Shown: positions 18,950 through 61,908 of the stretch, piece by piece | Layout: each line of letters starts with the position of its first letter | Position numbering within the stretch: the first letter of the stretch is position 1 | Assembly (NCBI RefSeq): GCF_037042905.1 | Contig: NC_087252.1 | Span: forward strand, 19,344,001-19,408,000 | Length of the DNA stretch: 64,000 nucleotides | Direction: 5' to 3' | Origin: Lytechinus pictus | Taxonomy: Eukaryota | Made by a program: the position numbers and the translations under genes | Notes under the pieces: generated by a model | Seen by the model: only the letters and a program-made list of their open reading frames with translations | The model's database searches: none | What the model was told of the DNA's origin: nothing

Positions 18950-20760
18950 TATTAGGCATTTGTATTACTTGTTTGTTTAGGCCTAGGCCTACTGATTTTT
19001 TACTCTGTACACATTCATGTAGTTCAGCCTTTCGCTGTGAATTCATTTCGTGAATAAAAATATTGGATAGATTTTAATGTTCAAAATTAGTATTTCTCCT
19101 GTTTCAGCTTTGCGACAAAGCTGTACTCTGTGCTGTGTTTTTTATTTCCAATCCGCCTATACTCGGATTTACAATTTTGACATTAATTTTTGAAGAACTT
19201 ATACAGTCTCCTTGAATAACAGTATGAACTATTTTATTCTCAATCAGGTCCGAGAGGTTCGAGGTGCCTTTATATTTTCTACTAAGCTCAGTTTCAAGAT
19301 CCTTTAGATAAAGAAAGAAGAGGAGAGACGACAAATTATCACCTGTATGGGGAATATTTCAGATATAAACCACTTGGATACTTTCGAAACATCAGAAAGA
19401 ATTTTACCATTAATGTCATTACTAGTCAATAAAAACACCAAAAAGTTTCTTATTTAGGAATCTTGTATAAATATCAACAATGCATTTTAAACAGAATATA
19501 TGGTCAATGGTTGAGTATTTGTGCATGAATCCTGCTTGATTCTCCCCTAAGATACCAACGTCAATATATTTTGTTAATCTCTCATTTAGAAGTAAAGTAA
19601 ACAGTTTGCCAATGCAGCTAAGGATCGAGACCCCTCGATAATTTTCCAGTATTTTTAACAGGACCATTATTTTTTAAAGATAGGAGTTATAACACCAATA
19701 CCCCAAACATCAGGAACTTTACCACTATTGATTACAATGTTGAATAACCTAGTAAGGATTGGAATAATAACCGCCGAAGTATCTGTTAAGAACTCATTTA
19801 TAGTTCCATCTATTATAATCTTTGATCCTTTTCATTTTTTAGAGTAAATTCATCATTGATGGCCGGATTATCAAAATGTTGGATTGTAGGAGAGGGGAAG
19901 TTATCGTAAGATTGATTTAAATCCTCAAAGTGGTCAACTATAGATCAGCAAAATTAGCCTCTATCTTTATATTTTTATTTACACTATTGCTTTGGAGAAT
20001 TTTCCAAAAATCCCTCGGTTTAGTAGGTCTCAAAGTTCGTATAGTTTGTTATTGAGATACTTATAATTTTATACCTTTTCCCACATTGAATCATGTTTTG
20101 CCTATTGTAGTCAGTCTGTTTTTTTTAAAGGATTTTTGTTTACATTTCGATACCTGTTTCTCAATCTATAGCAGCTGTGGTTGTACCATGGTTTCATAAA
20201 AACTGCTTTGTTTTTCTGGGCTTATTATTAGTAGATGGGTATAGCATTTCGTAATTTTGGCTGAATCTAATTATTAATAGAAATCATTGCTTCATTAATG
20301 GCTGTCTCATCCACCAGAGTTATATGGGAAGTAAGATTTTGTTTAATAAGGGTGGCTGCTTCTAGATTAATATCATCATGGACCTACTACTACTTGAGCT
20401 TGAACGCCATATTCGCGGGAAGGAATATTTCATCCCTGCATATATTCCTGTCTTCTACTCTGTTTTGCGAGTTAAAGAAATTTAATTTGGCTAAAGTTTT
20501 TGCAATCAGATCTGATGTGACCAAGCTGGGAATTTCATACCACTTCTGTTCTCAATTTTTATAAAAGGTTTTATCTTCCGCGTTTCGCGCGGTAAGAGGA
20601 ATTATTTCAAATTCCTCAATCTTTTCCCATTTTGGGGAGCTCATATTTCTTTCGAAAACAAGTTTTTATAATCACAGCAAGTCAATTGAGTTCGAGTTGA
20701 TAAGGGTATAGACGCAAGAAATATCTGTCTTTTGATTTAAATGTGATGAGATATCAAAAA
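18950..20760 (-). pseudogene. Old, decayed non-LTR retrotransposon (RTE-X/L2-like RT) remnant
   Basis: ORF 19422-19667 retains RT motifs NYRGVSILSCIGKLFT..LNERL..ENQAGF..YSTIDHIF. Flanks carry stops and frameshifts; boundaries approximate. Confidence 0.7.
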
Positions 20761-21027
20761 GTCATCCCTTCCCCCTAGGGAGCGTGCTGTCTAATTGTTG
20801 GCACGCTTTGCGTGCCGTTACCGCCCCTCAAAAATTACGCATACATTCGTAATTCCGAAGCTTCGTTATTCCGAAGGTTCGGATATTCCGAAGGTTCCTT
20901 ATTCCGAAGGTTCGTAATTCCGAAGGTACATTAGTCCGAAAACAAAATGAGGTTCAGTGTAGTAGGTTTCACGGTACACCATGTATTCTTTCTTGGGCAT
21001 ATGTTGGTCCTGAAAAGGACCACCCAA

Positions 21028-21069
21028 TCTCGACGTTTCGACAAGTGTGTTCTTGTCGTCCTCAGGAGA
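21028..21069 (-). ncRNA. Minimal type I hammerhead ribozyme of the Penelope pLTR
   Basis: UCUC-CUGAGGA-C-GACAAG(AACACA)CUUGUC-GAAAC-GUC^-GAGA: intact core, 6-bp stem II, loopless palindromic ACGU stem III. Predicted cleavage after 21032. Confidence 0.85.
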
Positions 21070-21406
21070 ATGAGCAAAGGTTGGTTGGTGTTGGAGTTTA
21101 GTTGGCGCTCTTCAATCTGGTAGATTATCTGCGCCAGGTCGTTTCCATGTTGCTTAATTCCCGCTTCAATGTCCTCGGCCGGCGTTAGACTAGTCTGACC
21201 TGTCATATAGCGAGGTGCAATATAATTAAGATTAGTTACCTCCACCATTAAATTGTGCATTTTTGTACTTCATAGTATGCAAACTTTTATAAGAAGCTAT
21301 GTCGAAACACAATTTTAGTAGTCTATAAGAATTAACATCACTAAATATAATCCTCAGAACAAAAGGAAGCGAGAGGGAGAGATGGAGAGAGATCAGTGGA
21401 ATATTC

Positions 21407-24400
21407 TTATTCGAATCTCTTTGTTTTTTTCACATAATTCAGGATTACTTTATAATCTGCATTTCTTCCCAATAATGTTGCTAGGTCTGATATTGGCGTA
21501 TTTAATTTCAGGCTTCTTTGCATAGTTCTTCTTTCTCTTTCATATTTATTACAATGTAGTAAAAAATGTTCTATTGTCTCAGGAACCTGACAATGTGAAC
21601 ATAGACCATTTTCATGTTGATTACATTTATACTGATAATAATTCAATTTACATTTTCCAAGTCTTAGCCGGTGAATCATAGTCTCTTCAAATCGAATGAG
21701 ACCTTGATAACTAATTGTTTCTGCCACGTTGGGTTGGATGCTAAATAAATGTCTTCCTTTAGATGAGGATGCCCATTGAGCCTGCCAGATTTCTTTATAA
21801 ATCAAAGACATGTGGTTTTTCCATTCCTCTTTGATATATGGAATGTGTAATTCAACTTCTTCTTTTGATGCTCCTTTTTTTGCTAATTGGTCTGCCACTT
21901 CGTTCCCGTGAATACCGCAATGGGATGGTATCCATTCAAAGTTGACATAAATATCTGATGATTGTAAAACTTTGATTTTATATAAGATATCAACAATAAG
22001 ATTGTTTTGAATTCGATTGCTTTCGAGTGCTTGAAGAGCTGACAATGAATCTGTAAAAATTATGATGGACATTCCTTTGTTATCTCCTAGCCAATCAAGT
22101 GCCATTACAATTGCTGTTAATTCGGCTCTCATTATACTTACAGAATTTAATCTATAGTATTTTTTAATGTCCAGTTCTGGTATATAAAAAGCAGAGCCGG
22201 TTCTCTTGTCTTCTTGTTTTGATCCATCAGTGTAGATCTTTAAGTAACCTTTCCATCTTGTATGTGTCCTTTCTAAGACACAGTTTTTCATATCTTGTAC
22301 TAAGTTACGTTGTTTGTTGATAACATTATGGATATAGTAAGATATATTTGGTATTTCATATGACCAAAAAGGTTCTCGTAATATTCTTTGGCTTAGTTGT
22401 TCAATTTGGATTTCTTCATTTGGCTTACATGCTCTAACTACAAAGGGTCCATGACCTACTTTCCAAGTAAATTGATCAATATACCAGGAAGGTTCAATAA
22501 TTTCTAAAGTAGGATGATGAGTATCTCTATTTGTTAAAAGATAAAACATGTATTTATCAACATACAGTTCTCTTCTTAGTTGTAAAGGTCGTTCACCACA
22601 TTCAACCTGCAGTGCTTCAAGGGCAGGGTTATATACTGCACCAGTTATTATTTTCAGTGACTGATATTGGACTGAATCTAATTCTTGTTTTAGTGAAAGG
22701 CTAGCCGAATCGTATAACTCACATCCGTAGTCTAATATGGATCTAATAAGACCTTTGTATATAATATAAAGAATCGTTTTATTATTTCCCCAACTCGTTC
22801 CTGCTATACACCGTAACAAATTGATTCTTTTTGAACATTTGAGTTTTATATAATCTATGTGCTTTTTCCAGGTGAGTTTCACATCAAACCAAATGCCCAG
22901 AAACTTATATTCTTTGTATTGTGGTATAGATTTATCTTTAATCTCAATATTTACCTCTATTTGCTGCCTATTGGTAAAAATCATAACAGCAGACTTTTGA
23001 GGAGATATAATCATACTCCAGGTTGAGCACCATTGTTCAATCTCTTTTAAAGCTTTCTTAATTTTCTTTTGTAGAAAGTCAAGATTTCTGCCTGAACACC
23101 ATATGGCAATATCATCGGCATACATAGAGATTTTTTACAGATTTTTCTTTCAGTTTTAGATCATTCAACATTAAATTGAACAAAATTGGACTAATCACAC
23201 TACCTTGGGGCGTTCCATTTTCCAGAACAAACTGTGAAGATAACTGACCATCAACTTTTACCTTGCAATATCGATCTTGTAAAAATGAATTAATCCACTG
23301 TAACATTTTTCCTTTTATACCAGCTTGATGACATTTAAATACTATTCCCTTTCTCCATAAAAGGTCATATGCTTTTTCAAGGTCAATGAAAATAACTAGA
23401 ACATACTCTTTGTTAGCTAATCCTTTCTGTATATCTGTTTCTAATCTAAGGAGCTGATCTAAAGAACTTCTATTTTTTCTAAATCCAGCCTGTGTTGGTG
23501 TCAGGATACTGCATCGCTCCATGAACCATACGAGTCTATTTTTAACCATTCTTTCCATCAGTTTGGAGAGAGTTGATGTCAAGGAAATGGGTCGATATGA
23601 AGAAGGGTTCGTTGGATCTTTACCTGGTTTAAGTACAGGGATCTGGGTAGAATAATGCCAATCTGTGGGTAGAATTGAGGAATTCCAAATACTGTTTATT
23701 AAAACTAATATGAACTGAAGAGCTATTTTTGGTAGGTGTTGTATCATAATTGACTTGATACCATCTGTACCTGCTGCAGAATTTTTCATATCCTTAACAG
23801 CGCTTGTTAATTCATTATATGTGAATTCATCATTAAGAGGTGTTTCAGAGGAGTAGCTTTCTTCGATCGTATTTCGTATCAAATTTTCAAATGAATTTCT
23901 TCTAATAATCTCGTCATTGTCTAATCGATTGTCGATCGTTTTAAAAGCCTTAGCAATCAATTCTGCCTTTTCTTGAGCATTAGCTATTGGTGTATTGTTT
24001 CCTGTTAATAAATTGGGAAATATATGTTTGGAGACAGAACCATTTCGTAGTCCTTTCACCATATCCCATACTTTGCCTAAGTTGGATGTTCTCCTCAAAG
24101 ACTGACAGTAGTTTAACCAGTATTCCTTTTGTGTTCGTCTCTTTATTTTTTGAGCATATGCTTTCTTTTTCCTGTACATTTCCAAGTCATCCTTTCTAAA
24201 ATGTCTATTTAATCGATTTCTATATTTATTTCTTTCTTTGATTGCTTCTTGGTATTCTAGTGTCCACCAAGGTACTGGGTTTTTTTGCTTTTCGATTTCT
24301 GCCTGCTTTGCGAAGGGTTTCTTCTGCCACTTCGTTAATAATCTGCAAAATCAAATTGTACTTATCTTGAATATTCAGATCATGTGAAAAATGTAATATC

Positions 24401-25134
24401 TTTATTTTACTAAATTTATGCTTCAATCTTTCCCGATATATTTCCCAGTTTACGTGCTTGAAGGACCAATTCTTTTCATGAGGATTGATGTTATCATCTA
24501 CAAATTCTATTTCGTGCAGTGAGCACTTGATAACATTGTGATCGCTCCCGAAATTTCCTAGCACGTTCCATTTTAGTTTGCTGGCGATTTCCTTCGAAGC
24601 AATTGTTAAGTCTAGGCAAGACCTTGTCCCTGTATGGATGTCCATTCTTGTAGGCGTCCCATCGTTCAACACTACTAAATCATGTTTTGTTATAAAGTTT
24701 TCAACTAATGTCCCATTACTATCTCGCTTTATGCTACCCCACAGAGGGTTGTGTGAATTGAAATCACCTGTAATTATTATGTTTTTTGAACAATTTTCAA
24801 TCAAATTTTCTAAATCTCGCAATTCTATCTTTTGACAAGGATTATAATAATTGATTAATGAAATGACCTTGTCATAAGTGAAAATGTCAATTCTTTGATA
24901 TTCCTTGATTTGAGGCAAATTGACTTCTTTGAAAGTAACTGTTTTATGCACATATATTGCAATTCCTCCTCTTCCTCCTTGGCCTCTATTTTTTATTACT
25001 GGGATGAAATCTGGAATTGCTAATATATTAAAATCAGTGAACCATGTTTCTTGTAAACATATCAAGGCAGGGATGGAGTTTAATTCTACATTTTCTATTA
25101 GCTCTTTGTAAAAGTCTGGACCGTGAGCATTCAT
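21407..25134 (-). pseudogene. LINE copy A ORF2 (APE-RT-RNaseH), broken into three ORFs by two +1 homopolymer indels (about 23130 and 24283)
   Basis: ORFs 24226-25134, 23112-24185 and 21407-23125 concatenate to the copy B protein. T6 vs T5 and T7 vs T6 runs; could be assembly errors. Confidence 0.85.
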
Positions 25135-25201
25135 GCTTTGGGCATTCCATTGTAAAATATTTAAAGGCCGAGCGTTAATTGTATTTGAGCTGTCTTTATT
25201 A

Positions 25202-26833
25202 CTAAAGACGATCGTGGATCATCTCTGGAGACACCTCGTTGATGTCTAAGCATCGCTTGGCTGCCTCAACCACTAATCTAATTCTGTTTGAATGAGAAGT
25301 TTCTTTGTCAAGGTTGTTAACTATAAAAGTGATGAATGCCAAAAAGTCGACTCTAGCATTTTCTGTGGATGCGGGAATTACAGGTCCAGACTCTTCTGCT
25401 TCATTAGGCCTACGATTATTCTCTTTACAAGTGAATTCTTGCGCATCTGTCTGTACAGACTTTTCCGCCGTTTCTGTTTGAGTGGATATGGTCGCCGTTT
25501 TTATTGTCGACCTCTTTACCGTTGGTATTTGATCTACTTTAGCTTCCAAAATATTCGGTTGATCTGGGATTTTCTTTCCTTTGGGGGGTTTGATAATATT
25601 CTTGTTTGATGATTCACGATCTTTCGAGTGATTTTCTTCTTTTTTTTCTTGATGGTATATTTTTGTTGCTTGAGCATAAGTTAAATTATTTTGCAGGCTG
25701 ACATTTTGAATATTTTTTGCTTCCTTATAATAGGTACATCCTTGATAGGCCGCTGAATGATTAAGGTTACATCTCAAGCATTTTGGGCTATCTTTATTGG
25801 GGCACATTTCAAAAGTGTGGGTCTCACCACATCTTACACATCTTAAATGACCCTTACAATTCTTTTGGATGTGCCCAAATTGCTGGCATTTATGGCATCT
25901 TGTTACAGTAGGGACAAACTCATCAACTACATATTTTTGGTATAGAAAGGAGACATGGTGTGGAAGATTTGGTCCTTTGAATACTAAAAGAACAGAAGGG
26001 GTTGGTGATAATTCACCGTTTATTCTTTTATTGAATCTCTTTACATACGTCACACCTTGTTCTTTCAAGAGTTCATTGAGTTCTTCCTCCGTGATTAGTG
26101 TATCTACTTTATGAATAACACCACGGATTTGAGTAATGGGTATATATTGTGCAACCTTGACAGGGGTGTGAATTAATTCAGTCATTTCTAAAATCTTTTT
26201 CATCTGTGTTTCATCAATACAAGTAACTTTCAGGCCTCCCTTTTCTTTCATAATTTTACTCACCTCACCATACTTTGAGTTGATTTCTTTAATGAGTTTT
26301 GCTGGGCTTATTTTGCTTATGCTTGAATTCTCGCCTACATCTCTTATTTCTACTATCATAGATTTATTCTCACTTCTGACATGTCTGATATTCTGCTTTT
26401 TACGATTTGAACTCGACCCTTCTTTGTTTTCGAAACTTCCTTTCCTAACTCTCTTGTCGTCTTCATTTATAGTTCTTGTACTTGCTTTTCTCTTTTTTCT
26501 CTCCACTTTTCGCCACTCCATTTCACTCTCAACTTCTGTAGAACTCTCTCTATCATTTGATTTATTGAGATGAGCTTGGAATATACCGTGTTTTCTATTA
26601 CTGCTCGGGGTCATCATTACATTACCAATTGCGGCTTGATAATATGCATCTTCTCCCGAAGAAATATCTGTTTCTTCCGTTTCCATTATCCCTTTTTGGA
26701 TAGTTTGAATATTATTAGAAGTACTGTTAGCATTGGGTTTTGTTAGTATGTTGGTTAGTTTACTGTAAATGTGCTTTTGAATTTCGCTGACAGGCTTACC
26801 AATCCGCTGTCCGAATCGAAAGAGTTGGTTCAT
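25202..26833 (-). CDS. LINE copy A ORF1, gag-like nucleic-acid-binding protein (543 aa)
   Basis: Three CCHC-type knuckles: CHKCQQFGHIQKNC, CVRCGETHTFEMC, CLRCNLNHSAAYQGC. Confidence 0.92.
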   Translation of the reverse strand: MNQLFRFGQRIGKPVSEIQKHIYSKLTNILTKPNANSTSNNIQTIQKGIMETEETDISSGEDAYYQAAIGNVMMTPSSNRKHGIFQAHLNKSNDRESSTEVESEMEWRKVERKKRKASTRTINEDDKRVRKGSFENKEGSSSNRKKQNIRHVRSENKSMIVEIRDVGENSSISKISPAKLIKEINSKYGEVSKIMKEKGGLKVTCIDETQMKKILEMTELIHTPVKVAQYIPITQIRGVIHKVDTLITEEELNELLKEQGVTYVKRFNKRINGELSPTPSVLLVFKGPNLPHHVSFLYQKYVVDEFVPTVTRCHKCQQFGHIQKNCKGHLRCVRCGETHTFEMCPNKDSPKCLRCNLNHSAAYQGCTYYKEAKNIQNVSLQNNLTYAQATKIYHQEKKEENHSKDRESSNKNIIKPPKGKKIPDQPNILEAKVDQIPTVKRSTIKTATISTQTETAEKSVQTDAQEFTCKENNRRPNEAEESGPVIPASTENARVDFLAFITFIVNNLDKETSHSNRIRLVVEAAKRCLDINEVSPEMIHDRL

Positions 26834-26961
26834 AAGCTTCTCAGAGTCTCGTTTTCAAATATAATGACACTTGTTGGATAAAAATCTATAAGACTTTCGC
26901 TTTTGCTGAAAGAGTAGTTCCGAAATCATATAAATCCACAGAAAATAAAGCTCAGATCCAA

Positions 26962-27029
26962 TGATACCTTGGATGTTGTCTCGGAGAACCTTGCGATGAC
27001 GCTTGGCACCACCCTTTCCGAGACCCTTT
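26962..27029 (-). pseudogene. H4: Captured histone H4 coding fragment (K8-I29)
   Basis: Translates [22 protein letters not shown], a 22/22 match to canonical H4. No start codon and no remainder of the gene. Confidence 0.95.
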
Positions 27030-27387
27030 TCTCGTCGCAGAAACGTGGCGCTAAAATCAAGTTGGTTGGTGTTGGAGTTTAGTTGGCGCTCTTCAATCTG
27101 GTAGATTATCTGCGCCAGGTCGTTTCCATGTTGCTTAATTCCCGCTTCAATGTCCTCGGCCGGCGTTAGACTAGTCTGACCTGTCATACAGCGAGGTGCA
27201 ATATAATTAAGATTAGTTACCTCCACCATTAAATTGTGCATTTTTGTACTTCATAGTATGCAAACTTTTATAAGAAGCTATGTCGAAACACAATTTTAGT
27301 AGTCTATAAGAATTAACATCACTAAATATAATCCTCAGAACAAAAGGAAGCGAGAGGGAGAGATGGAGAGAGATCAGTGGAATATTC

Positions 27388-30300
27388 TTATTCGAATCTC
27401 TTTGTTTTTTTCACATAATTCAGGATTACTTTATAATCTGCATTTCTTCCCAATAATGTTGCTAGGTCTGATATTGGCGTATTTAATTTCAGGCTTCTTT
27501 GCATAGTTCTTCTTTCTCTTTCATATTTATTACAATGTAGTAAAAAATGTTCTATTGTCTCAGGAACCTGACAATGTGAACATAGACCATTTTCATGTTG
27601 ATTACATTTATACTGATAATAATTCAATTTACATTTTCCAAGTCTTAGCCGGTGAATCATAGTCTCTTCAAATCGAATGAGACCTTGATAACTAATTGTT
27701 TCTGCCACGTTGGGTTGGATGCTAAATAAATGTCTTCCTTTAGATGAGGATGCCCATTGAGCCTGCCAGATTTCTTTATAAATCAAAGACATGTGGTTTT
27801 TCCATTCCTCTTTGATATATGGAATGTGTAATTCAACTTCTTCTTTTGATGCTCCTTTTTTTGCTAATTGGTCTGCCACTTCGTTCCCGTGAATACCGCA
27901 ATGGGATGGTATCCATTCAAAGTTGACATAAATATCTGATGATTGTAAAACTTTGATTTTATATAAGATATCAACAATAAGATTGTTTTGAATTCGATTG
28001 CTTTCGAGTGCTTGAAGAGCTGACAATGAATCTGTAAAAATTATGATGGACATTCCTTTGTTATCTCCTAGCCAATCAAGTGCCATTACAATTGCTGTTA
28101 ATTCGGCTCTCATTATACTTACAGAATTTAATCTATAGTATTTTTTAATGTCCAGTTCTGGTATATAAAAAGCAGAGCCGGTTCTCTTGTCTTCTTGTTT
28201 TGATCCATCAGTGTAGATCTTTAAGTAACCTTTCCATCTTGTATGTGTCCTTTCTAAGACACAGTTTTTCATATCTTGTACTAAGTTACGTTGTTTGTTG
28301 ATAACATTATGGATATAGTAAGATATATTTGGTATTTCATATGACCAAAAAGGTTCTCGTAATATTCTTTGGCTTAGTTGTTCAATTTGGATTTCTTCAT
28401 TTGGCTTACATGCTCTAACTACAAAGGGTCCATGACCTACTTTCCAAGTAAATTGATCAATATACCAGGAAGGTTCAATAATTTCTAAAGTAGGATGATG
28501 AGTATCTCTATTTGTTAAAAGATAAAACATGTATTTATCAACATACAGTTCTCTTCTTAGTTGTAAAGGTCGTTCACCACATTCAACCTGCAGTGCTTCA
28601 AGGGCAGGGTTATATACTGCACCAGTTATTATTTTCAGTGACTTATATTGGACTGAATCTAATTCTTGTTTTAGTGAAAGGCTAGCCGAATCGTATAACT
28701 CACATCCGTAGTCTAATATGGATCTAATAAGACCTTTGTATATAATATAAAGAATCGTTTTATTATTTCCCCAACTCGTTCCTGCTATACACCGTAACAA
28801 ATTGATTCTTTTTGAACATTTGAGTTTTATATAATCTATGTGCTTTTTCCAGGTGAGTTTCACATCAAACCAAATGCCCAGAAACTTATATTCTTTGTAT
28901 TGTGGTATAGATTTATCTTTAATCTCAATATTTACCTCTATTTGCTGCCTATTGGTAAAAATCATAACAGCAGACTTTTGAGGAGATATAATCATACTCC
29001 AGGTTGAGCACCATTGTTCAATCTCTTTTAAAGCTTTCTTAATTTTCTTTTGTAGAAAGTCAAGATTTCTGCCTGAACACCATATGGCAATATCATCGGC
29101 ATACATAGAGATTTTTACAGATTTTTCTTTCAGTTTTAGATCATTCAACATTAAATTGAACAAAATTGGACTAATCACACTACCTTGGGGCGTTCCATTT
29201 TCCAGAACAAACTGTGAAGATAACTGACCATCAACTTTTACCTTGCAATATCGATCTTGTAAAAATGAATTAATCCACTGTAACATTTTTCCTTTTATAC
29301 CAGCTTGATGACATTTAAATACTATTCCCTTTCTCCATAAAAGGTCATATGCTTTTTCAAGGTCAATGAAAATAACTAGAACATACTCTTTGTTAGCTAA
29401 TCCTTTCTGTATATCTGTTTCTAATCTAAGGAGCTGATCTAAAGAACTTCTATTTTTTCTAAATCCAGCCTGTGTTGGTGTCAGGATACTGCATCGCTCC
29501 ATGAACCATACGAGTCTATTTTTAACCATTCTTTCCATCAGTTTGGAGAGAGTTGATGTCAAGGAAATGGGTCGATATGAAGAAGGGTTCGTTGGATCTT
29601 TACCTGGTTTAAGTACAGGGATCTGGGTAGAATAATGCCAATCTGTGGGTAGAATTGAGGAATTCCAAATACTGTTTATTAAAACTAATATGAACTGAAG
29701 AGCTATTTTTGGTAGGTGTTGTATCATAATTGACTTGATACCATCTGTACCTGCTGCAGAATTTTTCATATCCTTAACAGCGCTTGTTAATTCATTATAT
29801 GTGAATTCATCATTAAGAGGTGTTTCAGAGGAGTAGCTTTCTTCGATCGTATTTCGTATCAAATTTTCAAATGAATTTCTTCTAATAATCTCGTCATTGT
29901 CTAATCGATTGTCGATCGTTTTAAAAGCCTTAGCAATCAATTCTGCCTTTTCTTGAGCATTAGCTATTGGTGTATTGTTTCCTGTTAATAAATTGGGAAA
30001 TATATGTTTGGAGACAGAACCATTTCGTAGTCCTTTCACCATATCCCATACTTTGCCTAAGTTGGATGTTCTCCTCAAAGACTGACAGTAGTTTAACCAG
30101 TATTCCTTTTGTGTTCGTCTCTTTATTTTTTGAGCATATGCTTTCTTTTTCCTGTACATTTCCAAGTCATCCTTTCTAAAATGTCTATTTAATCGATTTC
30201 TATATTTATTTCTTTCTTTGATTGCTTCTTGGTATTCTAGTGTCCACCAAGGTACTGGGTTTTTTGCTTTTCGATTTCTGCCTGCTTTGCGAAGGGTTTC

Positions 30301-31113
30301 TTCTGCCACTTCGTTAATAATCTGCAAAATCAAATTGTACTTATCTTGAATATTCAGATCATGTGAAAAATGTAATATCTTTATTTTACTAAATTTATGC
30401 TTCAATCTTTCCCGATATATTTCCCAGTTTACGTGCTTGAAGGACCAATTCTTTTCATGAGGATTGATGTTATCGTCTACAAATTCTATTTCGTGCAGTG
30501 AGCACTTGATAACATTGTGATCGCTCCCGAAATTTCCTAGCACGTTCCATTTTAGTTTGCTGGCGATTTCCTTCGAAGCAATTGTTAAGTCTAGGCAAGA
30601 CCTTGTCCCTGTATGGATGTCCATTCTTGTAGGCGTCCCATCGTTCAACACTACTAAATCATGTTTTGTTATAAAGTTTTCAACTAATGTCCCATTACTA
30701 TCTCGCTTTATGCTACCCCACAGAGGGTTGTGTGAATTGAAATCACCTGTAATTATTATGTTTTTTGAACAATTTTCAATCAAATTTTCTAAATCTCGCA
30801 ATTCTATCTTTTGACAAGGATTATAATAATTGATTAATGAAATGACCTTGTCATAAGTGAAAATGTCAATTCTTTGATATTCCTTGATTTGAGGCAAATT
30901 GACTTCTTTGAAAGTAACTGTTTTATGCACATATATTGCAATTCCTCCTCTTCCTCCTTGGCCTCTATTTTTTATTACTGGGATGAAATCTGGAATTGCT
31001 AATATATTAAAATCAGTGAACCATGTTTCTTGTAAACATATCAAGGCAGGGATGGAGTTTAATTCTACATTTTCTATTAGCTCTTTGTAAAAGTCTGGAC
31101 CGTGAGCATTCAT
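27388..31113 (-). CDS. LINE copy B ORF2: AP endonuclease - reverse transcriptase - RNase H - C-terminal CCHC (frame open to 31197)
   Basis: LQETW, GDFNSH, SDH (APE); YRPISL, QAGFR, PQGS, YADD (RT); YTDGS, AEL.AI, TDS, WIPSH.GI.GNE.AD (RNase H); CSHC..ETIEHFLLHC. Confidence 0.96.
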   Translation of the reverse strand: MNAHGPDFYKELIENVELNSIPALICLQETWFTDFNILAIPDFIPVIKNRGQGGRGGIAIYVHKTVTFKEVNLPQIKEYQRIDIFTYDKVISLINYYNPCQKIELRDLENLIENCSKNIIITGDFNSHNPLWGSIKRDSNGTLVENFITKHDLVVLNDGTPTRMDIHTGTRSCLDLTIASKEIASKLKWNVLGNFGSDHNVIKCSLHEIEFVDDNINPHEKNWSFKHVNWEIYRERLKHKFSKIKILHFSHDLNIQDKYNLILQIINEVAEETLRKAGRNRKAKNPVPWWTLEYQEAIKERNKYRNRLNRHFRKDDLEMYRKKKAYAQKIKRRTQKEYWLNYCQSLRRTSNLGKVWDMVKGLRNGSVSKHIFPNLLTGNNTPIANAQEKAELIAKAFKTIDNRLDNDEIIRRNSFENLIRNTIEESYSSETPLNDEFTYNELTSAVKDMKNSAAGTDGIKSIMIQHLPKIALQFILVLINSIWNSSILPTDWHYSTQIPVLKPGKDPTNPSSYRPISLTSTLSKLMERMVKNRLVWFMERCSILTPTQAGFRKNRSSLDQLLRLETDIQKGLANKEYVLVIFIDLEKAYDLLWRKGIVFKCHQAGIKGKMLQWINSFLQDRYCKVKVDGQLSSQFVLENGTPQGSVISPILFNLMLNDLKLKEKSVKISMYADDIAIWCSGRNLDFLQKKIKKALKEIEQWCSTWSMIISPQKSAVMIFTNRQQIEVNIEIKDKSIPQYKEYKFLGIWFDVKLTWKKHIDYIKLKCSKRINLLRCIAGTSWGNNKTILYIIYKGLIRSILDYGCELYDSASLSLKQELDSVQYKSLKIITGAVYNPALEALQVECGERPLQLRRELYVDKYMFYLLTNRDTHHPTLEIIEPSWYIDQFTWKVGHGPFVVRACKPNEEIQIEQLSQRILREPFWSYEIPNISYYIHNVINKQRNLVQDMKNCVLERTHTRWKGYLKIYTDGSKQEDKRTGSAFYIPELDIKKYYRLNSVSIMRAELTAIVMALDWLGDNKGMSIIIFTDSLSALQALESNRIQNNLIVDILYKIKVLQSSDIYVNFEWIPSHCGIHGNEVADQLAKKGASKEEVELHIPYIKEEWKNHMSLIYKEIWQAQWASSSKGRHLFSIQPNVAETISYQGLIRFEETMIHRLRLGKCKLNYYQYKCNQHENGLCSHCQVPETIEHFLLHCNKYERERRTMQRSLKLNTPISDLATLLGRNADYKVILNYVKKTKRFE

Positions 31114-31177
31114 GCTTTGGGCATTCCATTGTAAAATATTTAAAGGCCGAGCGTTAATTGTATTTGAGCTGTCTTTA

Positions 31178-32812
31178 TTACTGAAGACGATCGTGGATCA
31201 TCTCTGGAGACACCTCGTTGATGTCTAAGCATCGCTTGGCTGCCTCAACCACTAATCTAATTCTGTTTGAATGAGAAGTTTCTTTGTCAAGGTTGTTAAC
31301 TATAAAAGTGATGAATGCCAAAAAGTCGACTCTAGCATTTTCTGTGGATGCGGGAATTACAGGTCCAGACTCTTCTGCTTCATTAGGCCTATGATTATTC
31401 TCTTTACAAGTGAATTCTTGCGCATCTGTCTGTACAGACTTTTCCGCCGTTTCTGTTTGAGTGGATATGGTCGCCGTTTTTATTGTCGACCTCTTTACCG
31501 TTGGTATTTGATCTACTTTAGCTTCCAAAATATTCGGTTGATCTGGGATTTTCTTTCCTTTGGGGGGTTTGATAATATTCTTGTTTGATGATTCACGATC
31601 TTTCGAGTGATTTTCTTCTCTTTTTTCTTGATGGTATATTTTTGTTGCTTGAGCATAAGTTAAATTATTTTGCAGGCTGACATTTTGAATATTTTTTGCT
31701 TCCTTATAATAGGTACATCCTTGATAGGCCGCTGAATGATTAAGGTTACATCTCAAGCATTTTGGGCTATCTTTATTGGGGCACATTTCAAAAGTGTGGG
31801 CCTCACCACATCTTACACATCTTAAATGACCCTTACAATTCTTCTGGATGTGCCCAAATTGCTGGCATTTATGGCATCTTGTTACAGTAGGGACAAACTC
31901 ATCAACTACATATTTTTGGTATAGAAAGGAGACATGGTGTGGAAGATTTGGTCCTTTGAATACTAAAAGAACAGAAGGGGTTGGTGATAATACACCGTTT
32001 ATTCTTTTATTGAATCTCTTTACATACGTCACACCTTGTTCTTTCAAGAGTTCATTGAGTTCTTCCTCCGTGATTAGTGTATCTACTTTATGAATAACAC
32101 CACGGATTTGAGTAATGGGTATATATTGTGCAACCTTGACAGGGGTGTGAATTAATTCAGTCATTTCTAAAATCTTTTTCATCTGTGTTTCATCAATACA
32201 AGTAACTTTCAGGCCTCCCTTTTCTTTCATAATTTTACTCACCTCACCATACTTTGAGTTGATTTCTTTAATGAGTTTTGCTGGGCTTATTTTGCTTATG
32301 CTTGAATTCTCGCCTACATCTCTTATTTCTACTATCATAGATTTATTCTCACTTCTGACATGTCTGATATTCTGCTTTTTACGATTTGAACTCGACCCTT
32401 CTTTGTTTTCGAAACTTCCTTTCCTAACTCTCTTGTCGTCTTCATTTATAGTTCTTGTACTTGCTTTTCTCTTTTTTCTCTCCACTTTTCGCCACTCCAT
32501 TTCACTCTCAACTTCTGTAGAACTCTCTCTATCATTTGATTTATTGAGATGAGCTTGGAATATACCATGTTTTCTATTACTGCTCGGGGTCATCATTACA
32601 TTACCAATTGCGGCTTGATAATATGCATCTTCTCCCGAAGAAATATCTGTTTCTTCCGTTTCCATTATCCCTTTTTGGATAGTTTGAATATTATTAGAAG
32701 TACTGTTAGCATTGGGTTTTGTTAGTATGTTGGTTAGTTTACTGTAAATGTGCTTTTGAATTTCGCTGACAGGCTTACCAATCCGCTGTCCGAATCGAAA
32801 GAGTTGGTTCAT
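31178..32812 (-). CDS. LINE copy B ORF1, gag-like protein (544 aa)
   Basis: Three zinc knuckles, as in copy A. Confidence 0.93.
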   Translation of the reverse strand: MNQLFRFGQRIGKPVSEIQKHIYSKLTNILTKPNANSTSNNIQTIQKGIMETEETDISSGEDAYYQAAIGNVMMTPSSNRKHGIFQAHLNKSNDRESSTEVESEMEWRKVERKKRKASTRTINEDDKRVRKGSFENKEGSSSNRKKQNIRHVRSENKSMIVEIRDVGENSSISKISPAKLIKEINSKYGEVSKIMKEKGGLKVTCIDETQMKKILEMTELIHTPVKVAQYIPITQIRGVIHKVDTLITEEELNELLKEQGVTYVKRFNKRINGVLSPTPSVLLVFKGPNLPHHVSFLYQKYVVDEFVPTVTRCHKCQQFGHIQKNCKGHLRCVRCGEAHTFEMCPNKDSPKCLRCNLNHSAAYQGCTYYKEAKNIQNVSLQNNLTYAQATKIYHQEKREENHSKDRESSNKNIIKPPKGKKIPDQPNILEAKVDQIPTVKRSTIKTATISTQTETAEKSVQTDAQEFTCKENNHRPNEAEESGPVIPASTENARVDFLAFITFIVNNLDKETSHSNRIRLVVEAAKRCLDINEVSPEMIHDRLQ

Positions 32813-33012
32813 AAGCTTCTCAGAGTCTCGTTTTCAAATATAATGACACTTGTTGGATAAAAATCTATAAGACTTTCGCTTTTGCTGAAAGAGTAGTTCC
32901 GAAATCATATAAATCCACAGAAAATAAAGCTCAGATCAGTGCAGATCAGTGCAGCTCAGTCACCGGATCGGAGAGCTCGCTACTCTTCTGGCTAGCTCTG
33001 ATCTATATCTGT

Positions 33013-33046
33013 ACTGAGTCAAGTTTGTAAAAGCAGGCCTTATATA
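33013..33046 (-). promoter_or_regulatory. Putative TATA box (TATATAA 33046-33040) and Inr (TCAGT, A at 33015) at the Penelope/LINE junction
   Basis: Canonical -31 spacing between TATA and the Inr adenine. Confidence 0.55.
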
Positions 33047-33288
33047 CTCTGTCGAAGTGCCGTATGCAGGGTATCTCGCAGGGTACATGTCTCTGATTGG
33101 CTAGATAGGTCACATGACATCCACATATGCGGACGTGGGTGACAACACACAAATTGGGCGCGCAAAACCAGCGACGACCGGAAATTGCTGTCAGTTATCA
33201 TTCCCGCTAGGATTAGCATGAATGACAAAAGTCACCACTTCCGCCCATACACTGCAGTGCTCACACGTGTGTGGAACGTCCGGGTAGG

Positions 33289-34666
33289 CTAATTAGGCAA
33301 ATTAGCCTCTTTGTCTAGAACGGTAAGCCAGATATTGCTGAGTTGGAGGCCGCTGTCTTGAGGAACAGTGTTATGTTCCTCAATCTCCAACGCTTCTCTG
33401 ACTCTCCGTTGATACGAGTAAGGGACACGGGTGACCAGTCTACTCTCATCCCAAAGAATCCGGTGATCATGCGTATGGGCATGATCGATGATTGCAGATT
33501 TTTCCCTCTCGTCTCTCCTACCATGGGCCTTGTGTTCCTTAATCCGAGTGTTGAAGGAACGACCCGTCTCTCCGATGTAAACCTTACCGCATTCACAAGG
33601 AATTCGGTAAACTCCAGGGAGGTACGTCCTTGGAGTTGCGCTTGTCCTTATGTGTAGTGAGGGCAGATTGAAGCTTATTTGAGGAACTATGACGAACCTC
33701 AATGTCGGCTTCTCTCAAAATCCTCTGAATTTTGTGAGAGGCTGCTCCCAGATATGGAAGAACGACTCTCGCCTTGGGTTGTCCTGCACGAGGGTTCCGC
33801 GAGGGGGGAAGCTCAGTGCAGATCTTATGTGAGGGGTAGTTGTTACATTTCAAAACACGTTTGATATGCTCAAGCTCACCTCTCAGGTGGATCTGGTCAC
33901 TAACCTCATGCGCTCGTTTGACTAACGTCTTGTTGATGGATCTTAGCACTGATGGGTGGTGGAATGAACGATAGTTCAAGTACCGATCAGTGTGAGTAGG
34001 TTTCCGATAAACCTGATGGGATAGGGATCCCTGTGCCGTCCTCGTAATCTTTGTATCAAGAAAGGGGATAGATCCCTCATTCTCCATTTCCATGGTGAAC
34101 TTGATACACTCGTGTTGAGAGTTGAGGTGCTGTAGGAAATTGCTAGTTTCCTCAGCACCGTGTTGCCAAACCACAAAAGTGTCGTCCACATATCTAAGCC
34201 ACACTTTGGGTTTGTGGGTTGCTGACTGGAGAGCCGTCTCCTCGAAATGTTCCATGAACATGTTGGCTACCACTGGGGACAGGGGAGACCCCATGGCACC
34301 CCCTTCCGTTTGCCTGTAGAATGTGTCTCTCCATCTGAAAGAGGTGGAATTGAGGCACATCTCAAGCAGGTCATGGATCTCTAGAGGAGACAACTGTGTC
34401 CTGTCAGGGAGAGTTCTGTCAAATTTCAATCTCTCAAGGATGATGGCGCAAGCATCCTTAACTGGTACACTTGTGAACAATGACTCAACATCAAAGCTGA
34501 TGAGGAGGTCATTGTTAGAGACGTTCATCTGACAGATATGCTCAACGAAATGTTTAGAGTTTCTCACGTGATGCACGCCCTGACCAACAAGAGGCTGTAA
34601 GATGTAAGTCAAATGCTGAGCCAGTGCGTACGTGGGAGATCCTCTAGTAGACACAATAGGTCTGAG
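33289..34666 (-). pseudogene. Penelope-like ORF: RT (33593-34654 frame) + GIY-YIG endonuclease (33289-33702 frame), one frameshift near 33620, N-terminally truncated
   Basis: LRPIVS, SFDVESLFTSVP, GAMGSPLSP, WLRYVDD, IPFLD, VYRKPTHT; GVYRIPCECGKVYIGETGR..R.KEH..REALEI. Confidence 0.93.
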
Positions 34667-35637
34667 TGAGGTTCGTAATAAATTCCGAAGGTTCGTTAGT
34701 CCGAAAACGAAATGATTAACGAACCTTATTTCGTTTTCGGACTAACGAACCTTCGGAACAACGAACCTTATTTCGTTTTCGGATTAACGAACCTTCGGAA
34801 AAACGAACCTCATTTCGTTTTCGGATTAACGAACCTTCGGAATAACGCCACAAATGTTCGGATTAACGAACCCTTTTACGTTTTCGGATTAACGAACATC
34901 GAGGTATATAGGCAATTTACGTGTTTCGGAATTACGAACCTTCGGAATAAAGAACCTTCGGAATTACGAACCTTCGGAATTACGAAGTGTAACCAAAAAT
35001 TATATCCTGGCCATGCACGCGGTTGTCTTTTCTGCATGCAGTTTCTAGAGACCTGTATACATGGTATACTTAGTGCGTCTAAATTAGACCAAAGAGCTAT
35101 TAGCTCTCTGATTAGACCCTGGTGAACTGCTATATTATATTGACCCTAGGGTCCACGGTACAGTTAGTGGACGTACACTGATCTTGAACATAAATTATAC
35201 AAACAGGATGAGCCTGTCGCCGTTTAATGGCGAACTCGGTGTTGCCTAGGTAGCTTTCTTCAGATCTTCTTTATTCTGTTTTTGTTGGGGTACGTAGGAA
35301 CTGGAGTATATGTAGGCCCTGATTACCAATGACATATGAAATATTTTGCGACTATATTAAATGGCTGGCTGTTTAACGACATAAATTACTCGGACTCTTG
35401 GCAGGAGATCCCCGAAGGAAATTGCGAGGTCAAAGATCGTTTTCACTATTAAATTCTTGTATATACCACCGCAGCAGGTAAGCCTATTATAATAATTCAT
35501 TATGCCTGGTTATAAGAGCCTCCACAGTTCAAGATGATTAATTTCAGGACATTTGCACCAGCGACGTTGTATACATGTGAATTCCACACACTGGGCCTAT
35601 TAGTATTGGAATAGTGAGTTTTATTTTTTAATCTAAC

Positions 35638-54565: not shown

Positions 54566-54842
54566 GACGGTCAATCGGATCGGGGTCGCCCTAGCCACTA
54601 ACCCGTCTCTGTGGTCTAGTGGTTAAGGCACCAGCGATCAAAGCTGGGGGCCCGGGTTCGATTCCCGGCAGAGACATTTTTTCGGCATTACCAATTTTTT
54701 CCAAAGGGCAGATAGCTCTGGGGAACCTTGATTTAAGCTACGCCTACCATTGTTCTCTTCATCCATTTCTTTGACAAAATATTTAAATAAAAGAGTTGCC
54801 AAAGCTGTTGTACATGTATAGTTTCACACATTTATATATATA

Positions 54843-58295: not shown

Positions 58296-60760
58296 TAACC
58301 AATATTCTCAAAATAGTCAACTTCCAGATGTACCTCTATCATTCCTAAACACAAAACACTCGGTAATAATTTATGTACATTATACACGATGCATATGTAC
58401 GTAATTATGTACATATTTTACGCAGGTGCTGAAATTTATTCCATTCCTTTATTCTCTATTGATATCATATGCTACAAAACAATGGTATACAATAAGAAAA
58501 AAAATTGGGAGACACAATAATGGCAAATATCATATATATATTTTTTTTTACAAAACAGCCATTTATTAATAAGGGCCTTGGGAACGATTTTTTTTTACTG
58601 GGGTGCTGATGTAAATTTGAAAAAAAAAAGTTTTCTTTACAAAGCGAAGGTCATTTTGGTCAAGAGAAATTTGAAAGCAAAAAATAAATAACACAAAATG
58701 AAGGCCTTTTTGGTCCAGAGAAATTTGACGAGCAAAAATAAAAGTGTTTTTTTTTCTACAAAAAGTACGTCATTTTTGTTACATTTTTCCATTTTTCAAC
58801 ACCTACCAGAATTCCAGGGGGTGCTGCCTATGGAGAATAATACACGCAGCACCCCCTATCACACCTGCGTCCCAGGGCCATGATATTGAATAGCAAAAAG
58901 GAAGCTACAATGAAATATATAGTAACGTATTATAATATGTCAATTAAAACTAACTTGCTAATGACAAGACAACCGAGATTAGAAATGCAGTAAAAAAATG
59001 AGGAAGGACTGTGCAAAAATATTTGTCCCATAATTAGACTTTAAGTCACATTTGTATAAAATGCATTGGAGTTGTGTTTATATCTAGACGAAAATAAGGC
59101 AAGGTAGCTTCATTCTTACTCCCTGTAGTACAATGAGTGATTTAATGTACTATAACAAATAACGAGAATCAATAAATCAATAAAAAATAAAACTAGTGAG
59201 GAGTCGAAATATGAGAATATGAAATTTCAAGTTATTACATTAGGAAGTTTCAATGCCTGTTTTAAAATAAAATTTTAATGATCAATTTCTCCTTCGTATG
59301 TGCATTTCAATTCAAGAAAACCTTTACACTGTTTAAACGCTGTAAAAAAAATTTAAGCATGTTGTTTAAACCCGTCACTCTAACAACTACTTTTTAAACT
59401 TCTTAAACAATAACCACAAAATTAAACAACTTGTTGTTGGAGTGACAGGCTTAAACAACGTACTATTTTTTATCTATTATTTTTTTACTGTGTATGTTTT
59501 TTAAAGCATGCCCCATTTTTCATTCGTTTCAACTCTCTTGTTATAATTACGTGCCAACCTTTATTTCATTATTAGTTTCTATCATTTATAATTGTATTGC
59601 TGATTAAGGTACGTTATTTTACATGAATTCGAAAATAAATCCTTGAATTGGAATGGATTTATAAAAAGGCGGGGTGTGCAAGTTAATGGGAATTAGAAGA
59701 CAGTCAATAATGAGTGGGCTGCTGCATTCAGTAAAAGCTGTATAAACCGAAGCATTTGAACTTCTGCCTGGCCTCCGTAATACGAAATCGTATGATATTG
59801 TATATCATGTTGACCAAATCACATCAAAAGATCATCAAGGCCATTGAAGTGAGGAAACACAGAAAAGTTGAACTAAAGAGAATTGATTCGAGCAGATTCC
59901 TTTTTTTTTTTTTACCTTTCGACACGCTGGTTGGATTTTAAATAAACGCCCACGTGGAATGATTGTCCCTGTTCTCTGAACGCTTAAGAAGGTAAACGTT
60001 AATATGCCAGTTTCTTCGTTTGTGGTTAATTGCTGTTTTTCAATAATCTTATATGCACGGCGTAAGATCAAATCGTACCACACTATATAATTGTGACGGC
60101 AACTCCTTGTTGACGTCTTTCTTCAATACTTTTGGTAATAATTGTCATTCACTATCAGTGGCATGAGAGCCAAAAATGGAGGGGGTCAGATATGGCGTAT
60201 CGGGTAAAATGTATTTAAACTTGCGAACGAGTGAAGCGAGTGAGCAAACTATTGACAATTTTACTACAGACATCCTATTTTGTAATTGATTTTCACATAA
60301 TATTCAGAAAATAATATCATATTTCATCCTTTTCTCTCTTTCTTTCTTTCTTTTTTTCTTGTTCGTGACTTTTTTTTTTTGGGGGGGGGAGGCAAGTGTC
60401 CCCATCCCCCATCTGTTTACCATTCAGACGTAATAGCATTACGCCTTTAACCCTTGCCTAAAGAGGCTGGGCCTTATTAAACTATAGCCTACTCATGCTA
60501 ACTGATTACTCGAGGACTAATACAAAAAACTTTTTTTCAGTTGGGGATGATAAATCAATAAAGCTCGCCCCAAATAATCATTAAGGTTGGTTGAAGCTTA
60601 AAAATTATTTAATACATGAGGACAGCTGGTAACGTTATCAGAATTTAAGTATGAAGTTGAATCAACCATAGGTGCCCTGTTTTGCAGTGCTTCCACTTCT
60701 TCCTATTTTCAAGGGGTTCCCATGTGTCGTTGAGGATTTCAAAGACGGTTTTAGAAACTG

Positions 60761-60917
60761 NNNNNNNNNNNNNNNNNNNNNNNNNNNNNNNNNNNNNNNN
60801 NNNNNNNNNNNNNNNNNNNNNNNNNNNNNNNNNNNNNNNNNNNNNNNNNNNNNNNNNNNNNNNNNNNNNNNNNNNNNNNNNNNNNNNNNNNNNNNNNNNN
60901 NNNNNNNNNNNNNNNNN
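60761..60917. other. Assembly gap
   Basis: Run of N. Confidence 1.
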
Positions 60918-61353: not shown

Positions 61354-61449
61354 GTGATTCACTTTTCTTTCAAATACATCATTCGGTGAAGTCTTTTTTT
61401 GGTGTTATTTTACTATCTATCTATATTTGTATCCATCTGTCTTTTATAT

Positions 61450-61908
61450 NNNNNNNNNNNNNNNNNNNNNNNNNNNNNNNNNNNNNNNNNNNNNNNNNNN
61501 NNNNNNNNNNNNNNNNNNNNNNNNNNNNNNNNNNNNNNNNNNNNNNNNNNNNNNNNNNNNNNNNNNNNNNNNNNNNNNNNNNNNNNNNNNNNNNNNNNNN
61601 NNNNNNNNNNNNNNNNNNNNNNNNNNNNNNNNNNNNNNNNNNNNNNNNNNNNNNNNNNNNNNNNNNNNNNNNNNNNNNNNNNNNNNNNNNNNNNNNNNNN
61701 NNNNNNNNNNNNNNNNNNNNNNNNNNNNNNNNNNNNNNNNNNNNNNNNNNNNNNNNNNNNNNNNNNNNNNNNNNNNNNNNNNNNNNNNNNNNNNNNNNNN
61801 NNNNNNNNNNNNNNNNNNNNNNNNNNNNNNNNNNNNNNNNNNNNNNNNNNNNNNNNNNNNNNNNNNNNNNNNNNNNNNNNNNNNNNNNNNNNNNNNNNNN
61901 NNNNNNNN
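61450..61908. other. Assembly gap
   Basis: Run of N. Confidence 1.

Follow-up and report, generated by a model that had tools for sequence, protein, structure and literature searches.

How did two nearly identical retrotransposon copies, joined by a fragment of histone mRNA, come to lie between what looks like the promoter of another mobile element and that element's ribozyme? The question is raised by a 64-kb window (the whole stretch of DNA analysed here) of Lytechinus pictus NC_087252.1, whose numbering we use throughout and in which all relevant parts lie on the minus strand. There, two copies of a long interspersed nuclear element (LINE) interrupt the tail of a Penelope-like element (PLE), downstream of its TATA box and upstream of its hammerhead motif, a layout first described in a sequence-only reading of the locus and largely borne out by our analysis. 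That reading proposed a LINE that prefers PLE tails or a PLE/LINE chimera mobilised as one unit, with chance insertion as a fallback. The fallback fits best. We consider it probable that the composite arose by ordinary nested retrotransposon insertion, that the LINE is not PLE-specific and that the composite is not a mobilised unit. As such, the locus is closer to a neat textbook example than to a discovery: sister copies reveal the empty site of the nested insertion, and the LINE–mRNA–LINE junction records how a reverse transcriptase (RT) behaves.

A dimer of an I-like LINE

Repeat search and self-BLAST revealed two LINE copies arranged head-to-tail and 99.8% identical over 5879 nt, with 10 substitutions and 2 one-base indels in homopolymer (A) runs between them. 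Copy B (27061 to about 33016/33020) is apparently full length, the repeat and self-BLAST matches running to 32937 and beyond. It carries two intact open reading frames (ORFs): ORF1 (31178-32812, 544 aa), with a CCHC knuckle at residue 313, and ORF2 (27388-31113, 1241 aa), in which Pfam recognizes Exo_endo_phos, RVT_1 and RNase_H; the 3' end of copy B reads ...CCAACCAAC. Copy A (21080-26958) lacks the first ~58 nt at its 5' end and begins, ~58 nt inside the LINE, with GATCTGAGC; the two one-base indels break its ORF2 into three ORFs. The LINE may start at CAGT, CTCAGT or ACTCAGT, a choice that contigs of the relatives L007 and L008 did not narrow. The CCHC knuckle in ORF1, and the apurinic/apyrimidinic endonuclease (APE), RT and RNase H domains in ORF2, are those of I-like (RNase H-bearing) APE LINEs, and by domain content the element is I-like.

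Copies this similar, with two one-base homopolymer differences that look like long-read errors, could be read as a tandem 6-kb repeat made by mis-assembly. However, the junctions are unique (a histone H4 bridge and distinct 5' ends), the ten substitutions are scattered, and both outer junctions fit a single PLE empty site, so that an assembly artefact is hardly credible.

When ORF2, and separately its C-terminal 400 aa, served as queries for homologues, the closest protein relatives were metagenome and Logan contigs (at most 54% identity); one 840-nt ENA contig matched at 93%, and no gene model of L. pictus came up. Looking up ORF1 and ORF2 by exact match yielded nothing, nor did two exact-pattern scans of JGI metagenome contigs with the LINE 3' end. 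An all-against-all search with ORF1 recovered the L. pictus gene model P0381 (99% identity), which led to a third LINE copy at a locus that we call L009; the one other member of the P0381 cluster comes from the allelic haplotig of that locus.

The untranslated regions (UTRs) of the LINE have features of their own. In the 5' UTR, 10-nt repeats, GAGCTGCACT / GATCTGCACT, form a variable array (32937-32975; L009:7237-7290). In the 3' UTR, a stem-loop, CTGGCGC...GCGCCA (27070-27115), stands 25–30 nt from the LINE end. Contigs of both L007 and L008 show it. Because it has been kept in L008, a relative from a TARA ocean metagenome that is only 47% identical, it is probably a recognition element for the RT.

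The host element and its empty site

The element that surrounds the dimer encodes an RT followed by a C-terminal GIY-YIG endonuclease, the architecture of endonuclease-bearing (EN+) PLEs, and its relatives carry PF00078, PF26215 and PF01541. Its upstream part (33021-34668), 5'-truncated at unit position 1044, comprises an RT ORF (33593-34654; RVT_1 in Pfam), a GIY-YIG ORF (33289-33702; GIY-YIG in Pfam) and the first 270 nt of the tail. It shares 97% aa identity with L. pictus LOC135157522 and 98.5% nt identity with the unit at L003:9988-12795. The downstream part (20956-21079) matches the final 124 nt of the L003 and L004 units at 100% identity and ends with the unit. Aligned with one L003 unit, the window covers positions 1044 to about 2690 (34668-33021) and about 2685 to 2808 (21079-20956). 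Judged by this alignment, the host is a single 5'-truncated PLE unit (positions 1044-2808) whose tail ends at 20956, with the LINEs in between. L003 itself contains six PLE units, three plus three, in inverted head-to-tail arrays with a period of 2808–2826 nt, and so displays the partial tandems of the pseudo-long-terminal-repeat (pLTR) type and the adjacent inverted, 5'-truncated copies that characterize EN+ PLEs.

To define the empty site, we used ten uninterrupted sister tails: L001, the six L003 units and L004 from L. pictus, L006 from L. variegatus and L005 from Diadema setosum. These tails read ...TTTTACAAACTTTGCTCATTCTCCTGAGGA..., with the empty site ...ACAAACTTTGCTCATTC...; in longer context, the Lytechinus tails read ...TATATAAGGCCTGCTTTTACAAACTTTGCTCATTCTCCTGAGGA... 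there. In the window, the 5' side matches Penelope through ...ACAAACTT, to 33021, and on the 3' side Penelope sequence picks up at CTTTGCTCA (21079). Comparison with the empty site leaves CTT, 3 bp, as the certain target-site duplication (TSD), and places the insertion 24 nt after the PLE TATATAA and 4 nt before the minimal hammerhead.

The rejoined sequence proposed earlier disagrees with the ten sister tails: the 5' Penelope part ends at ...ACAAACTT, and the GACTCA that follows it in the window is not Penelope sequence. The four bases GACT (33017-33020), compared with the empty site in L001, L003, L004 and L006, are not PLE and not securely LINE; they could be extra bases, the LINE 5' end, or part of the TTGA duplication of copy B. 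Nor does the imperfect 9-bp duplication that was reported hold, since beyond CTT it is mostly insert sequence; it appears as nine bases because the CTCA of the insert happens to be in register with the CTCA of the target. We rejected an imperfect 9-bp TSD as the main reading because it needs two adjacent mismatches in an insertion with only 0.2% difference between its copies, and because the other TSD known for this family is perfect and 4–6 bp long.

The histone H4 bridge and two routes to the dimer

The two LINE copies are separated by a bridge of 102 nt (26959-27060) made up of ~19 unassigned nt, a piece of H4 mRNA and TTG. Positions 26963-27028 encode residues 8-29 of H4, identical at 22/22 positions (phmmer against PDB H4 chains, E about 2e-9), and TTGATTTTAGCGCC in the bridge is a candidate 5' end of the H4 mRNA. 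Read along the minus strand, the junction of PLE and copy B is ACAAAC-TTGA-CTCAGTAC, that of copy B and the bridge is ...CCAAC-TTGA-TTTTAGCG, and that of H4 and copy A is GGTATCA-TTG-GATCTGAGC. A perfect (C)TTGA direct repeat, in which the C is ambiguous, therefore stands on both sides of copy B. TTG is found at all three joints (33017-33022, 27058-27061 and 26959-26961); it may represent bases that the RT added before template jumps, or may in part be TSD. Microhomology between the priming strand and the LINE 3' end was looked for, and none was found.

Tail-to-internal dimers of non-LTR (long terminal repeat) elements are common and already described, and unequal 5' ends in them have been attributed to double insertion (PMC5932611). 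The present dimer resembles these tandems (McGurk and Barbash 2018, PMC5932611) in its unequal 5' ends and in the short direct repeat around the upstream copy, but differs from them in the 102-nt bridge with H4 mRNA at the junction. The H4 mRNA therefore calls for at least one RT template switch, and serial jumps in a single event are possible. Template switching by LINE RTs gives rise to chimeric retrocopies such as L1–U6 and L1–mRNA chimeras, and R2 performs end-to-end template jumping in vitro. As in the L1 chimeras, a truncated LINE here carries on its 5' side a cellular RNA fused in the same orientation, with extra bases (TTG) at the joint; unlike in them, the cellular piece is followed by another LINE, this one full-length, and the donor is a non-polyadenylated histone mRNA.

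We propose the following course of events. An older, 5'-truncated copy of the 2.8-kb PLE, about 1.4% diverged from its sister units, would have been invaded by a young I-like LINE. The LINE endonuclease would have nicked the A/T-rich site TTTTACAAA^CTTTG, between the PLE TATA box and the cap-like CATTC, and the RT would have left the RNA of copy A ~58 nt short of its 5' end to go on along an H4 mRNA, a template switch that we infer from the sequence. From there, two routes to the dimer appear about equally likely. Along the first, everything would have happened in a single event of target-primed reverse transcription: the RT would have jumped from H4 to another LINE RNA, at its 3' end, and TTG at the three joints would be bases added before each jump. 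Along the second, a LINE–H4 chimera would have inserted with the TSD CTT, and copy B would then have entered at the same nick, AAG^TTTGTAAAA on the bottom strand, with the TSD (C)TTGA; both TSDs would be perfect and short (3–5 bp), of the length seen at L009. A local hot spot would follow from the second route, and in this form alone does the site-preference idea survive. Along either route, the PLE signals beside the LINEs (promoter-like module, hammerhead and stem-loop) would be bystanders that were present before the LINE arrived.

Does the LINE prefer PLE tails?

The third LINE copy, at L009, shows 98.9–99.5% identity, and L010 carries the allelic version of this locus. Both are unplaced scaffolds of GCA_037042905.1 with flanks 99.7% identical, and they are probably alternative haplotigs that hold one insertion. 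The L009 copy lies in unrelated AT-rich DNA and has a 5' truncation of its own. Its flanks read ...GATCTAATGTT on the 5' side and TGTTAATGTTACC... on the 3' side, with a perfect TSD of TGTT or AATGTT. No PLE occurs within 7–8 kb of the LINE at L009/L010, where the flanks are unrelated to the PLE tail, and the target CTAA^TGTT has only a loose A-rich/T-rich junction in common with the target in the PLE tail. None of the ten other PLE tails contains a LINE. The suggestion that the LINE seeks out PLE tails as a class finds no support in these observations.

Both 5'-shortened LINE copies, copy A and the L009 copy, start at GATCTG, which suggests a preferred stop or jump point of the RT.

LINEs such as R1, R2 and those of the Tx1 type are target-specific. 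The present element is like them as an APE-type LINE that lies within a repeated element, where it may have used one bond two times, but its other copy is in unrelated DNA, so that the property of having all copies in one target is missing; with one extra locus (n=1), independent copies did not share a target.

A narrower form of preference deserves separate consideration, namely a hot spot at which the LINE endonuclease, or open chromatin at an active promoter, favours the promoter patch of the PLE and the same nick is used twice. The exact TTGA or CTTGA around copy B speaks for it, as do the position of the nick in both events (5'-AAG^TTTGTAAAA on the bottom strand), the length of both TSDs (3–5 bp, like the 4–6 bp of the third copy) and the different 5' ends of the copies, a signature of double insertions (PMC5932611). 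Against this, the third copy sits in non-PLE DNA at a target only loosely alike, ten other PLE tails are empty, and TTG also occurs at the joint of H4 and copy A, where a TSD cannot explain it and serial jumps with added bases can. On balance we find such a hot spot unlikely. Its most specific form, in which the same bond of the PLE tail was struck by a LINE–H4 chimera and then by a full-length copy, making the CCAAT/TATA/CATTC patch the hot spot, appears a little less likely still. If it were true, each insertion there would acquire, at -31 of the LINE initiator, a TATA box and, downstream of the LINE, a histone-type 3' end signal. Should copy B be a second strike on the same nick, the locus would show in nature how a LINE can insert twice at a promoter.

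Ordinary nested insertion, the reading that we prefer, also has points that weigh against it. If copy B inserted separately, the same phosphodiester bond was used twice, which would imply some local preference because chance alone would be very unlikely to achieve it. The insert's CTCA lines up base for base with that of the PLE cap motif, an unexplained 1-in-256 coincidence. What we say of target preference rests on n=2 loci, with one independent extra LINE copy. Finally, the RNA data discussed below come from few samples and ~6% of each run, and a transcript limited to a tissue or stage could escape them.

Is the composite a mobile unit?

A second proposal was that PLE promoter, LINE–H4–LINE and PLE 3' module moved as a unit, to which we add the variant that the dimer was copied from a pre-existing dimer. 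The parts do stand in the right order and orientation, with the TATA box at -31 of the LINE CAGT. However, neither the 10 PLE tails nor the third LINE locus yielded another composite copy or junction, and the PLE on either side is a truncated unit of the ordinary kind, cleanly interrupted at a single point where nothing but CTT is duplicated. In two ribosomal-RNA-depleted RNA-seq libraries, depth was 130–390 per direction over the PLE tail, which is multicopy, and 0–4 over the LINE 3' end. No junction signal stood among the best-supported features of these libraries, and at 21079/21080 no loose ends could be read. A look-up of the words of the 3' junction listed no indexed run, a weak test with only 2 sampled words from a 61-nt query. 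We conclude that mobilisation as a unit is very improbable.

The promoter-like module of the PLE tail

The claim that the dimer sits at the PLE start site depends on the sequence upstream of it. A block AGCCAATCA-AGAC with a CCAAT box (33096-33100), ~50 nt ahead of the TATA box, is conserved in the Diadema setosum relative although the neighbouring sequence has diverged. TATATAA (33040-33046) is present in all 10 Lytechinus sister tails, with GTTTAAG at the same place in Diadema. Between Lytechinus and Diadema (ORF identity ~73%), the tail thus retains the CCAAT block, the TATA-like box and TTGCTCATTC. In intact PLE copies, the A of CATTC, which we take to be the cap motif of sea-urchin histone genes, stands 31 nt downstream of the first T of the TATA box. 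In the LINE CAGT (33013-33016), the A is at the same 31-nt distance from that T, as the sequence-only reading had noticed, and exactly where the A of CATTC stands.

The only PLE promoter that has been dissected, that of the D. virilis Penelope, is TATA-less and internal (PMC2377424), and the label 'Penelope TATA box' is for this reason an assumption. Given the conserved context, the TATA box is plausibly real and part of a CCAAT/TATA/CATTC promoter-like module. Insertion at the PLE start site holds geometrically, at the +1 predicted from CATTC; in the two RNA-seq libraries, no sites of molecule starts or ends were found, and so no PLE or LINE transcript start.

The hammerhead and a histone-like 3' module

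Downstream of copy A, positions 21022-21075 form a minimal PLE-type hammerhead ribozyme (min-HHR). Helix I pairs 21075-21066 with 21031-21022; CUGAGGA (21065-21059) and a bulged C (21058) precede helix II (21057-21040), which is followed by GAAA (21039-21036) and CGUC (21035-21032), with predicted cleavage at 21032|21031. The motif has the core CUGANGA...GAAA with a cleavable H17 after U (here GUC), a helix II of 6–7 bp with the bulged C at its 5' end, a helix I of 4+5 bp, and ACGU instead of helix III. This agrees with the description of min-HHRs as having a long helix II, an unpaired base, a short helix I and no helix III (PMC4209133). The minimum-energy fold consists of exactly helices I and II (z -3.3). 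Relative to Diadema, we found three compensatory pair changes in the hammerhead (in helix I, in helix II, and in a tertiary pair, C3:G8 to U3:A8) and a fourth in the adjoining stem-loop; 97.7% of cells are paired, vs 27–50% when the partners are slid. Rfam hammerhead models gave no match at the gathering threshold, nor at E up to 10 on 20700-21300, as expected because the motif is without helix III.

The copy A tail was said to end about 47 nt above the cleavage site; the distance is 48 nt from 21080, and the cleavage site is a predicted one. Single min-HHRs do not self-cleave in vitro and need a second copy to form a dimer (PMC4209133). Because only one copy lies downstream of the LINEs, a self-cleaving 3' end of the composite is doubtful, and of the proposed succession of promoter, LINE–H4–LINE and self-cleaving end it is the order of parts that stands. 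Read ends did not pile up at 21031/21032 in the two RNA-seq libraries; the same negative result was reported for the Anolis PLE (PMC11167929).

Immediately beyond the hammerhead, 20987-21021 resembles the 3' end signal of histone mRNAs, with a 6-bp stem and UUUC loop (21021-21006), AACA, and then CAAGAAAGA (20995-20987), presumably the sea-urchin consensus of the U7-binding box. The Rfam Histone3 model scores the stem-loop at 16.9 bits (E 0.11), below its gathering score of 34. Diadema differs in the stem by one compensatory and one wobble change, both of which preserve it, and shares AGAAAGA. If any signal ends LINE transcripts that read through, this stem-loop is a better candidate than the lone min-HHR.

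The PLE tail as a whole (20956-21079 and 33021-33110; L003:12500-12795; L005:6130-6445) has CCAAT/TATA/CATTC followed within 90 nt by the hammerhead, the stem-loop and CAAGAAAGA. It looks like a sea-urchin histone gene turned inside out, in a module that is conserved between Lytechinus and Diadema. A promoter 50–90 nt upstream of a 3' processing signal poses a read-through problem like that of a retroviral LTR. The min-HHRs of PLEs (Cervera and de la Pena 2014, PMC4209133) are like the present one in the long helix II, the unpaired base 5' of it, the absence of helix III, the short helix I, the ACGU palindrome and the location in the tail or pLTR; here, by contrast, the motif is directly followed by the histone-like stem-loop and CAAGAAAGA box and preceded by CCAAT/TATA/CATTC. 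If the module works as it looks, the PLE would borrow transcription and 3' processing from histone genes, which is not described in the PLE papers that we consulted.

Features flanking the host element

An array of 21-nt repeats, TTCGGAAT...GAACC (20838-20955, minus strand), abuts the PLE 3' end from outside the unit, and its inverted partner lies at 34669-34992, also outside the unit, with the ends of the arms pointing outward. RNA-seq loose ends at 20956 continue into the ATG of the next unit in other PLE copies. In DNA contigs resembling L. variegatus, the summed depth of the 21-nt repeats is ~10-fold above that of the PLE tail, and the arrays may be a separate, very abundant non-autonomous element that was co-inserted with the PLE. 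Elsewhere in the window, runs of N occupy 60760-60917 and 61449-61908, and Rfam identifies a tRNA gene at 54605-54676 on the plus strand (56.8 bits).

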